Shown: positions 48,134-50,493 of the stretch, piece by piece
How the letters are laid out: each line of letters starts with the position of its first letter
How positions within the stretch are numbered: the first letter of the stretch is position 1
Sequence record: NC_071015.1
DNA: 64,000 nt
Strand: one strand, 5' to 3'
Notes under the pieces: generated by a model
What the model saw: only the letters and a program-made list of their open reading frames with translations
Database searches by the model: none
Told to the model about the DNA's origin: nothing
Position numbers and translations under genes: made by a program

Positions 48134-48502
48134 ATGAAAGTAGTTATCTACGGTCGCCCTAACTGTCCTTGGTGCGATAAAGCTAAAGAGCTGTGTGACA
48201 GCGAAGGCATTGAGTACGAGTATATCAATATTCGTGAAGTGGGGATCGACGGCGTTAAACTGTCTCAGATTTGTGGTACAGAAGTTACCACGGTTCCGCA
48301 GATTCTGGCTGACGGTGTTCACATTGGCGGATACGATAAATTCGCTCCTTTTGTTTCTGAGAACGAAGTAGAGAATCCAAACATGGATTACTTTGTTCGG
48401 GAACGCGGTGAAGGCGATTGGCAAAAGGCCAGTTTCGAGTATTACACTCGTTGTAAACCGTTGTACGAGATGGATTACAAGAAAGAGCCGAAAGTAATAT
48501 AA
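48134..48502 (+). CDS. Glutaredoxin with a C-terminal extension
   Basis: CPWC active site, TVPQI and IGGYD. Confidence 0.9.
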   Translation: MKVVIYGRPNCPWCDKAKELCDSEGIEYEYINIREVGIDGVKLSQICGTEVTTVPQILADGVHIGGYDKFAPFVSENEVENPNMDYFVRERGEGDWQKASFEYYTRCKPLYEMDYKKEPKVI

Positions 48503-48540
48503 TCCCTATTATATGTCAGGAAGTGTATGTCTAGCTTTTG

Positions 48541-48894
48541 CCGCCTATAGCGCGCTTAAGAAGGGTATACCAGTTGACATCCAGGGATTGTAAGACCTTC
48601 CAGTGCCGTGTGTGGCGATTGGGAAGGCGACAACCCCCGTGCAGCTTTCACCTGTTGCGGGGGATTAAATCCAAGAGTGAACGGCGACTTAAGTTCGCTA
48701 CTGTAAGTAGCTCTTGGTGGGTGGGACCTCTGAAAGGAAGAGGTGCTGTCGCAACGCGTTTGATAGAATGTCCAGTAGCATAAGCTGAATGCATCTCCGG
48801 CGTAATCGTCGGGACTATGTTGGTAGAACCCGAACTCCAACCTGGGCGGTTATAAAAAACAATATCTATCTTAACTGGGAACGTTGTACCCTTT
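48541..48894 (+). ncRNA. Candidate large structured RNA
   Basis: Several local hairpins plus long-range helices in a region without a credible ORF. Strand assumed from neighbours and G-U wobble pairs. Confidence 0.5.
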
Positions 48895-49183
48895 ATCCTT
48901 AACCTTTTTGTGCCAGCAGTCGAATTCAGAATAAGCTACAAACTACATCATACCTGACGATGAGCCTATTCCTGATCGAACTGATTTGGCACATCTCTTT
49001 AGAGTGGTCATTAATTGATCATTCTTACCCGCTTGGGGGTTCTGAACGAAAGCGACATATCTACCGTTATACAGCGCTGATGCTCACAACGGTTCAGAAG
49101 GGACTTGATAGTCTTCCTTTACGCGATATCGGAACCCCCAACCACATCTACATGACGGTATAGTGTAGATCCCATGGGGTGGG

Positions 49184-49287
49184 GCGTCGAAACATCTGAA
49201 GAGTCCATCGACGAGATAAATAATGTGGACGAAACGGGTTTCACTACTAGGTATTCCAGTTACCTCAGTGAAACCGTCATGTCGAGC
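49184..49287 (+). ncRNA. Type I hammerhead ribozyme
   Basis: CUGAAGA (49196-49202), stem II GUCCA/UGGAC, GAAA (49231-49234), stem III, GUC cleavage triplet (49276-49278), stem I ACAU/AUGU. Confidence 0.88.
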
Positions 49288-49647
49288 TGTGCCTTAACCG
49301 TGAGCAGCAACCGAGGGGAAACCAAGGTTAAAAAGAAGCGTTATAAGGAATGGGTTAAATGTTAGCAGGATTGGACAACCTTTTGGAATCCTTTTCTGCT
49401 TGGGCAACATTAATCACATTCATAACAAACGGTCCGCTCTTTGCCCGAGAGAAGTTGTTGACATCAATGTAGACAGCCCTTTGAAGATTTGGTTTGTAGC
49501 TTGGGGTTGCTCCCAATCTGCCTATCGAGTCTTTCTTGGAGTGTTTGCCATGACACCTTACATATCCCCTACTCTGCCTAATGGTGGGGTAGGGGTTTAT
49601 GTTTGCCTTTTGATCTTTTGTAAGCTTACAAAAAGAAAGGAACATTT

Positions 49648-50493
49648 ATGAACCCAGTTGATTTCTCAATTGACTATGTCATGAATGGTGCGAATAACAT
49701 TAGCGAATATTTGCTCAAGCTGGCCTTTGAAAACCCCAACAACGGGTACGGGGCAGTATGGGGATCCATTAATAATGAATTCTCCATTGAGCAAGGTATT
49801 CGTGAAAAGGTTATCTTGAAGATGGTCGCTCCGATGCTCCAAGTGGCAGGCGGAACAACCGAGATTATCGATCTCTCCAGTGCACTGATCAATAATCTTC
49901 AAGGCGGCATCATTCATGTTAACGTCCCCGATTTCTTAACCGGTGGACGGCGTATCCTGGAAGTGGTTGAAGTTTATCCGGGTAATATCAATCGTGCTAT
50001 TACTAGCGGATACAATTTCTCTAACTACGCCAGCTGCGGTGCTGGACAAATTAACAACTCCTTAAACCGTCTGATCAACGGTCTGGATGATGGTAATGTT
50101 CAGCGTACATTCACAAGCTTCACGATTGTCGGAAACAACTCCTTCCTGATTCGTGATGCTGGCTCGGCATTGTTCAACATGCTGGCCAAAGTCATTCTCT
50201 CGTATGACGACAACTTCTCTGTTGTTCCTGTGAAGATGTACGACAAGTTTTATGAGCTTGTTGAGTTAGGGGTGAAAGCCTACATCTATAAGAAGTGTAA
50301 ACGAGGAATGCAAGAAGCGGTCTCTCGTTTCGGTGTTACCGTTGATGACTTGCAAGATGATCTGCAAGAGTTCTCCAGTGCGGCTCAAGAGTTCAAAGAG
50401 TTCTATGAGACCCAGATGAAGAAATACATGGCGTACGCTGATCCGAAAGGTAAAGCTGATCAAATTAAGATGATTACTCCGAGGAAACGGTAA
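49648..50493 (+). CDS. Probable virion structural protein
   Basis: 281 aa, RBS AAGGAA; head of the plus-strand operon. Confidence 0.6.
   Translation: MNPVDFSIDYVMNGANNISEYLLKLAFENPNNGYGAVWGSINNEFSIEQGIREKVILKMVAPMLQVAGGTTEIIDLSSALINNLQGGIIHVNVPDFLTGGRRILEVVEVYPGNINRAITSGYNFSNYASCGAGQINNSLNRLINGLDDGNVQRTFTSFTIVGNNSFLIRDAGSALFNMLAKVILSYDDNFSVVPVKMYDKFYELVELGVKAYIYKKCKRGMQEAVSRFGVTVDDLQDDLQEFSSAAQEFKEFYETQMKKYMAYADPKGKADQIKMITPRKR

Follow-up and report, generated by a model that had tools for sequence, protein, structure and literature searches.

A conserved, modular non-coding RNA with a predicted hammerhead ribozyme beside tRNA genes in phiKZ-related jumbo phages

Results

An RNA locus between tRNA genes and virion genes

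The DNA that we analyzed (the window, a stretch of 64,000 nucleotides from record NC_071015.1) derives from the 253.7 kb genome of the Kosakonia jumbo phage Kc263 (MZ348422), to which it is 100% identical, and window positions equal genome positions minus 124,000. The segment under study, 48541-48894, falls inside a 1145-nt gap (48503-49647) without a conserved reading frame. Upstream of this gap in Kc263 are genes for tRNA-Asn (47883), tRNA-Ser (48006) and a glutaredoxin (48134-48502); downstream are virion genes, including one at 49648-50493 that has homologues across the phiKZ-type jumbo phages, down to PHIKZ042. An intrinsic terminator on the plus strand (49566-49605), which consists of a 13-bp stem followed by a T tract, precedes this virion gene. 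On the other side, a candidate sigma-70-like promoter (ATTACA, 18 nt, TATAAT; 48474-48503, plus strand) ends 7 nt ahead of the conserved RNA, matches of this kind being no more numerous in the region than in shuffled controls. The whole terminator-bounded unit runs on the plus strand from 48510 to approximately 49600.

Sensitive blastn located the same region, unannotated and in the same syntenic place, in the phages Survivor (Pantoea), Yubaba and Sureiya (Serratia), N1M2 (Klebsiella), pEt-SU (Edwardsiella), SXP01 (Shewanella), OBP (Pseudomonas) and AH04 (Erwinia). By blastn, nucleotide identity to the Kc263 region was 74-83% among the phage relatives, whereas the adjacent glutaredoxin gene gave no DNA match to them. 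When we searched with a pattern from the invariant core of the hammerhead ribozyme described below and then with nhmmer, four jumbo-sized contigs from IMG/VR (L018, L022, L023 and L026) and one metagenome contig (L081) were gained, so that in total 13 distinct jumbo phages or contigs carry the RNA, five of them metagenomic. In these 13 members the order of tRNA genes and glutaredoxin, RNA and virion genes is kept at one syntenic place, and the terminator is conserved in all of them. The gene immediately upstream differs among members (glutaredoxin, tRNA-Met or other open reading frames) while the RNA is constant. Yubaba, N1M2 and contig L081 have a tRNA gene right in front of the RNA, with 7-10 nt between the two, which suggests that the 5' end is set there by tRNA-type processing. 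The SXP01 locus carries a 370-nt insertion (860-1230 of L006) between the RNA and the glutaredoxin gene, and the latter (617-859) is annotated there as a 'putative virion structural protein'.

The RNA was absent from close Aeromonas relatives, from KPN8 and from an EL-like phage. Neither the RNA nor a cluster of its motifs was found by nhmmer in the syntenic loci of pAEv1810, D6, AerS_266 and CF8 (Aeromonas), KPN8 (Klebsiella) and HHBS47_1 (Pseudomonas), and a covariance model of one sub-domain (R1, described below) did not find that sub-domain in the complete genomes of the same phages apart from CF8. These five are the next-closest phages, with the neighboring virion gene at 43-69% identity, and the syntenic gaps of the six RNA-less phages are not conserved with one another. 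The OBP copy is too divergent for R1 and can be aligned by profile HMM. Beyond phages, a three-anchor pattern was searched in 185,579 bacterial and archaeal species genomes and returned three matches, all attributed to chance by nhmmer. At the position of the Kc263 RNA, pAEv1810 has about 850 nt of unannotated DNA after its tRNA cluster, with a strong terminator at the end (1020-1886 of L011). We detected no homology of this stretch to the RNA or to other Aeromonas phages, and it may be an unrelated non-coding RNA.

Conserved folding of the 5' domain

The initial annotation had read 48541-48894 as a candidate multi-helix RNA some 350 nt long, had pointed to the large ornate RNAs that often adjoin phage tRNA genes, and had named folding energy against shuffled sequences, as well as homolog collection with covariation, as ways to check it. 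Folding of the single sequence was marginally better than that of shuffled controls on the plus strand (z = -1.81, 4 of 100 shuffles as good) and gave z = -0.77 on the minus strand; with folding energies this marginal, the case for structure rests on comparative data. In an 11-sequence alignment, 79% of the cells were paired in a hand-curated structure, compared with 71% in shuffles, and 45 pairs were changed on both sides, compared with 26, with none of 500 shuffles as good. The covariation score of the curated structure was 0.336 and fell to 0.08-0.14 when pairing partners were slid by 1-3 columns. Both the genomic context and covariation thus bear out the many-helix RNA beside tRNA genes.

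All elements of the structure lie on the plus strand. It begins with a first hairpin domain (48515-48578), which comprises H1 (GUCAG 48515-19 with UUGAC 48574-78; 85% paired, three pairs changed on both sides), H2 (GUAUGUCU 48525-32 with GGGUAUAC 48563-70; 80% paired, four pairs changed on both sides) and a variable apical hairpin. The AH04 subgroup builds this domain differently, as a long stem. An invariant linker, GUAAGACC (48590-48597), is identical in 13 of 13 members. Two hairpins follow, H4 (CCUUCC 48596-601 with GGAAGG 48622-27) and H5 (CCCCCG 48634-39 with CGGGGG 48658-63), and both are present in all 13 members with differing stem sequences. A second linker, UAAAUCC, leads into H6/H7 (linker and helices together 48666-48717). 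H6 (CCAAGAG 48671-77 with CUCUUGG 48711-17) is 83% paired and encloses H7 (GGCGAC with GUUCGCU), which is 88% paired; stem variants such as AAGAG/CUCUU, AGG/CCU and AGGAA/UUCCU exemplify the covariation of this unit, which also has a loop-E-like internal loop (GUGAAC opposite AAGUAG). When each member was folded alone, H4, H5, H6/H7 and the H8 hairpin described below formed at constant places from differing sequences. The local hairpins of the initial annotation (CCUUCC/GGAAGG, CCCCCG/CGGGGG, CCAAGAG/CUCUUGG, ACCUC/GAGGU and GUUGG/CCAAC) were likewise recovered at the same place, with different sequence, in 11-13 homologues. We also checked the alignments by eye for a partner of GGGAU (48586-90), either in the 3' tail or in AAAUCC, and the results were inconsistent.

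The remainder of the segment folds into sub-domain 2 (48719-48891), which is closed by H15 (GGGU 48719-22, part of a UGGUGGG stretch, with ACCC 48888-91). H15 is 100% paired, with GGGC/GCCC as the AH04-group version and GGAU/AUCC as that of SXP01. It encloses the H8 hairpin (48724-47) and a long, interrupted and stacked stem made up of H9 (GCAACG 48751-56 with CGUUGU 48882-87), H14 (GAUAGA 48762-67 with UCUAUC 48865-70; CUAAAGA/UCUUUAG in the AH04 group) and H10 (GUCCAG 48770-75 with CUGGGC 48842-47). This long stem is topped by a four-way junction with H11, H12 and H13. The H11 loop is AAGCUGA, invariant across members as AAGCUNA, and H13 (GUUGG with CCAAC) has an invariant loop with GAACCCGAA (48826-34). 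We built the covariance model R1 of sub-domain 2 from seven members, and it recovered three AH04-group members on which it had not been trained, with E values of 8e-8 to 2e-10. In the R1 alignment, which is fitted to the model, 95.3% of cells were paired and 21 of 33 pairs were changed on both sides. Sub-domain 2 was single-copy in each of the four genomes tested (Kc263, AH04, Yubaba and SXP01). Contigs L026 and L023 are without the whole of it: a short unrelated stretch replaces its approximately 170 nt (at about 1000-1090 and 1140-1200, respectively), and UGGUGGG has become UGGUUGG.

A mid domain, a hammerhead ribozyme and an optional 3' module

Conservation and covariation continue beyond the segment into a mid domain (48899-49167, plus strand). 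It contains a hairpin of the Kc263/AH04 type (UGUGCCAG 48909 with UUGGCACA 48986) and, after it, a junction that is closed by a helix between GGGGGUUC (49035-42) and GGAACCCCC (49131-39). Two inner hairpins belong to this junction, as do two strands that are conserved, GAACGAAAGC at 49044-53 and GCGAUAUC at 49123-30. Nine of the 12 pairs of the closing helix were changed on both sides (for example CG:3, GC:2, UA:2, AU:2).

The mid domain is followed on the plus strand by a type I hammerhead (49185-49282), outside the 350-nt region itself. Its core consists of CUGAAGA (49196-202) and GAAA (49231-34). Stem I is formed by 49192-95 and 49279-82, stem II by 49203-07 and 49226-30, and stem III by 49234-44 and 49268-77, and a pseudoknot joins CGUCG in the 5' flank (49185-89) to CGACG in loop II (49209-13). 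Cleavage is predicted between C49278 and A49279, which places 769 nt between the first conserved base of the RNA and the cut in Kc263. Across the 13 members the core CUGANGA...GAAA is invariant, with variation (A, C or U) confined to the free N7 position, and the cleavage site is GUC followed by A, G or C. In the same 13 sequences 89% of the cells were paired and the covariation score was 0.373, compared with 0.154 in shuffles; stems I, II and III all covary, with four of four pairs changed on both sides in the open stem I, and the pseudoknot, three pairs of which covary, reaches 98.5% pairing. The Rfam Hammerhead_1 model matched the element at 16.6 bits (E = 3), below its gathering threshold of 34, and had no match at E up to 5 in the loci of nine relatives. 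From these comparisons we conclude that 49185-49282 is a complete, covarying type I hammerhead that is predicted to cleave. With type I hammerheads it shares the CUGANGA...GAAA...UH core, three covarying stems, an open stem I and a tertiary pseudoknot. It differs from them in its setting, which is not a satellite, a retrozyme or a stretch between mRNAs but the 3' end of a conserved non-coding RNA of large size.

KPN8 (L015, 774-860, minus strand) also has a homologous type I hammerhead, identical in the design of stem II and the pseudoknot, downstream of a minus-strand gene. No large RNA precedes it, so the ribozyme is more widespread than the RNA body. An apparent second hammerhead upstream in SXP01 proved to be only a partial motif and was taken as chance. 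The core pattern CUGANGAGUC...GACGAAACGGG was also seen in other contexts, namely L017, L019-L021, L024, L027-L029 and approximately 55 metagenome loci (L030-L092); the matching contigs are unrelated viral or metagenome sequences, several of them from gut samples.

Between the predicted cut and the terminator lies a structured 3' module on the plus strand (49279-49565), in which 20 of 44 predicted pairs were changed on both sides and UAACCGUGAG and GUAGACAGCC are invariant. This module is optional: it is present in nine members and absent in Survivor, pEt-SU and SXP01, where the terminator directly follows the ribozyme. As two members are without sub-domain 2 and three without the 3' module, not every part of the RNA is essential.

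Long-range helices and the extent of the RNA

The initial annotation had further proposed two crossing long-range helices, implying a pseudoknot or a switch, and a small H-type pseudoknot. All of the segments involved are present in the Kc263 sequence: CCGCCUA (48541) and UGGGCGG (48843); AAGGGUAUA (48561) and CCAGUUGA (48570), with their intended partners UUAACUGG (48871) and UGUACCCUU (48885); and UCGGG (48809), CCCGA (48829), GUUGG (48819) and CCAAC (48837). The crossing helices themselves (CCGCCUA/UGGGCGG, and AAGGGUAUA plus CCAGUUGA with UUAACUGG plus UGUACCCUU) behaved no better than shuffles in 11 homologues. For the four long-range and pseudoknot helices taken together, 66.7% of cells were paired in these homologues, compared with 64.7% in shuffles (47 of 500 shuffles as good), and eight pairs were changed on both sides where 9.5 were expected (441 of 500 as good). 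Moreover, CCGCCUA sits in the variable apical hairpin of the first hairpin domain, and the long-range strands are claimed by better-supported partners, GGGUAUAC by H2, ACCC by GGGU 48719 in H15, and others by H9 and H12. Homolog collection and covariation therefore upheld the local hairpins, and yielded other partners (H15, H9 and H14), but not the crossing helices. In the H-type pseudoknot, the GUUGG/CCAAC hairpin is conserved, whereas UCGGG/CCCGA fails the covariation test and is unsupported, since UCGGG is the 3' strand of the covarying H12 and the loop is invariant. A short core of the second long-range helix, CCAG 48570-73 with CUGG 48875-78 (3-4 bp), is about 82% paired across homologues; it becomes CCCG/CGGG or CCCG/UGGG in the AH04 group, which is a single clade-level change and amounts to weak evidence, and could possibly represent a 4-bp tertiary contact.

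These results bear directly on the proposal of a stand-alone RNA of about 350 nt that is held together by crossing long-range helices and has its 3' end made by the hammerhead. Complementary segments do exist in Kc263 and the CCAG/CUGG core is kept in most members, and a genuine hammerhead is indeed found downstream. The cut, however, lies 385 nt beyond the end of the 350-nt segment, past the conserved and covarying mid domain. Combined with the shuffle-level pairing of the long-range helices and the loss of their strands to H2, H12, H9 and H15, this makes a stand-alone 350-nt species highly improbable. Since the mid domain (48899-49167) belongs to the unit, the 350 nt constitute the 5' domain of an RNA of approximately 770 nt.

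Contigs from RNA libraries

We examined Logan contigs with at least 80% likeness to the region. Their four source libraries are of RNA or RNA-like, and two of these are wastewater metatranscriptomes. Contigs from relatives fell only on 48554-49700, and this restriction to the RNA suggests a stable transcript. In run X11, a 737-nt contig begins at the 5' boundary of the RNA (about 48503) and reaches into the ribozyme (about 49237), and a separate 207-nt contig covers 49295-49500, so that the cleavage site is unbridged in that run; in run X20 one 325-nt contig bridges it. Such contigs carry no proof of transcription, ends or strand; RNA libraries may also contain DNA, and the glutaredoxin gene alongside has diverged too far for use as a silent control for contig coverage. 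Read in this light, the pattern suggests a stable RNA that may be at least partly cleaved.

The neighborhood and the contigs also inform the idea that the element is a long structured 3' trailer with a role in cis and none in trans, protecting or processing the tRNA/glutaredoxin transcript ahead of it and insulating that transcript from the virion operon. The hammerhead would then merely remove the terminator. The element closes the tRNA/glutaredoxin unit on its 3' side, and in three members a tRNA immediately precedes it; this position would suit such a trailer, as would the terminator that follows, in three phages immediately after the ribozyme. However, the RNA has over 15 covarying helices and many unpaired positions that are invariant within its roughly 770 nt, which goes far beyond the needs of a stabilizer, the upstream gene varies while the RNA is constant, and the RNA-library contigs hold the RNA alone. 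We consider a purely cis-acting trailer unlikely.

Comparison with known RNAs and coding potential

We searched the window, the isolated element and the loci of nine relatives against Rfam, at gathering as well as permissive cutoffs, and obtained only tRNAs and the one weak hammerhead match. Searches of full texts on jumbo phages, phiKZ or Chimalliviridae in combination with hammerheads or non-coding RNA yielded no account of this RNA. It is a genuine family that matches nothing in Rfam or in the literature searched, in agreement with the earlier suggestion of an undescribed class.

The initial annotation had recognized no tmRNA, RNase P or intron consensus, and the Rfam and ARAGORN negatives matched. 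A tmRNA or tRNA-like identity was rejected, as neither ARAGORN nor the tRNA model detects anything besides the two true tRNAs; the strands of the H10-H13 junction connect as in a tRNA, but a 13-nt loop takes the place of the T loop and a CCA end is absent. A group I or II intron was rejected because there is no Rfam intron match and the element is intergenic and terminator-bounded. RNase P RNA was rejected as well, since no model matches and the look-alikes of its CR-I and CR-V motifs (GAAAGUCCGC, in L081, and AGAACCCGAAC) do not pair into P4. The CR-I look-alike strand, AAGUYCGC, has its local partner in H7, where an A-U pair has become G-C by compensatory change, and its pairing with the GAACCCGAAC loop fails in most members through a C-A mismatch. 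With bacterial RNase P RNA, then, the 350-nt domain has in common a similar size, a place beside tRNA genes and short CR-I/CR-V look-alikes, and it differs in matching no model, in not forming P4 and in carrying the look-alikes on a module that two members dispense with.

The same observations weigh on the possibility that the RNA is catalytic beyond its hammerhead, for instance as an RNase-P-like tRNA processor, a ligase or a splicing ribozyme with the invariant junctions as its active site. Invariant junction and loop nucleotides, tRNA-gene neighbors, a four-way junction with tRNA-like strand connectivity and the CR-I/CR-V look-alikes are what one might expect of such an RNA. Against this stand the lack of any match to Rfam ribozyme, RNase P or intron models in 10 members at E up to 5-10, the pairing of the CR-I look-alike in H7 and, in most members, not with that of CR-V, and the dispensability in two phages of sub-domain 2, which bears both motifs. 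We accordingly assign a second catalytic activity a distinctly low probability.

Comparison of the members did not reveal a reading frame that is open across all of them, although open reading frames of 81-97 codons are present over the region in Kc263. The sole CDS annotated in the gap, QYN80068.1 (63 aa, 49174-49365), starts inside the hammerhead, crosses the cleavage site and has no counterpart in the relatives; it is probably a false gene call. In N1M2, a hypothetical protein (N1M2_252; L004, 1307-1819, minus strand) is annotated opposite the conserved RNA and part of tRNA-Met, and it too is probably spurious, given that its frame is not conserved in other members. These reading frames, together with an HNH endonuclease gene at the syntenic place in the Aeromonas phage pAEv1810, could speak for an unannotated protein-coding gene or a decayed mobile element such as an intron or homing-endonuclease relic. 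Yet no frame stays open and an intron core is absent; the element occupies one location in all members and is single-copy in the four genomes tested; and compensatory base changes are the opposite of decay. A coding or mobile-element origin is hardly credible on these grounds.

Discussion

The locus specifies a conserved non-coding RNA that folds into several domains, has an intact hammerhead and is bounded by a terminator. Our analysis favors, as a reading that is probable though far from assured, that 48541-48894 is most of the 5' domain of a modular folded non-coding RNA, and that a body of approximately 770 nt, freed by the hammerhead, acts in trans. The RNA would have a promoter of its own or would be transcribed as the last part of the tRNA/glutaredoxin unit, and either the start of transcription or tRNA-type processing would define its 5' end. 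Locked by the pseudoknot between loop II and the 5' flank, the hammerhead would cut after C49278. This cut would free a body composed of the 5' domain, the mid domain and the ribozyme, ending in a 2',3'-cyclic phosphate, and would part from it the optional 3' module, which would receive a 5'-OH end, and the terminator hairpin. We found no phage-encoded RtcB ligase in five members, which leaves a subsequent ligation or circularization step without support.

The freed body would act in trans as a stable folded particle, and the invariant unpaired stretches (GUAAGACC, UAAAUCC, UGGUGGG, the loop AAGCUNA, the loop GAACCCGAA and an A-rich strand) would be its working surfaces. By analogy, it would most likely serve a phage or host protein as scaffold or decoy, or act as a self-assembling ornate RNA in the manner of GOLLD and ROOL. 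The latter are large phage-linked non-coding RNAs next to tRNA genes. The RNA described here resembles them in kind, not by descent: it is hundreds of nucleotides long, many-helix, modular, non-coding, phage-borne and tRNA-adjacent, and it has conserved unpaired nucleotides. Searched with the GOLLD and ROOL covariance models, neither Kc263 nor the loci of nine relatives gave a match, whether the cutoff was the gathering score or an E value of 10. Unlike GOLLD and ROOL, the Kc263 RNA has a built-in hammerhead that is predicted to define its 3' end, and it occurs only in one clade of jumbo phages that infect Gammaproteobacteria, not in Lactobacillales, rumen or lake sequences. GOLLD, ROOL and OLE are reported to form RNA-only homo-oligomers (PMC12286853). 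The self-complementary AGCU within the invariant loop AAGCUNA may be a hint of homo-oligomers here as well.

A more specific version of the trans-acting particle can be put forward tentatively, and we think it doubtful but worth stating: a self-maturing ornate RNA of one clade of phiKZ-related jumbo phages, 0.6-0.8 kb in size, that would trim itself and work as a particle at the time of infection. Such a particle might assemble from RNA only, through the palindromic AAGCU loop, or might form the core of a phage ribonucleoprotein, and it might serve in the handling of phage tRNAs or translation, or in blocking host defense.

Another precedent for phage non-coding RNAs by tRNA genes is provided by the stable RNAs of T4, species 1 and 2 (rnaC/rnaD), which lie where the tRNA cluster ends, are co-located and co-transcribed with phage tRNA genes and whose role is not known. 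They are about 140 nt long, are processed by host tRNA enzymes and are without a ribozyme, and we know of no homology between them and the Kc263 RNA, nor did we see any.

The structure of this RNA is supported by covariation in four separate modules, and it would provide a clear natural case of a hammerhead that sets the 3' end of a long non-coding RNA, as is predicted here. It also corrects the annotation of several phage genomes in which spurious open reading frames lie over it. Because the phages are culturable and their hosts tractable (Kosakonia, Klebsiella, Serratia, Pseudomonas fluorescens and Erwinia), the RNA is directly testable. Large, elaborately folded RNAs without known function are rare, and each of them has opened new biology.
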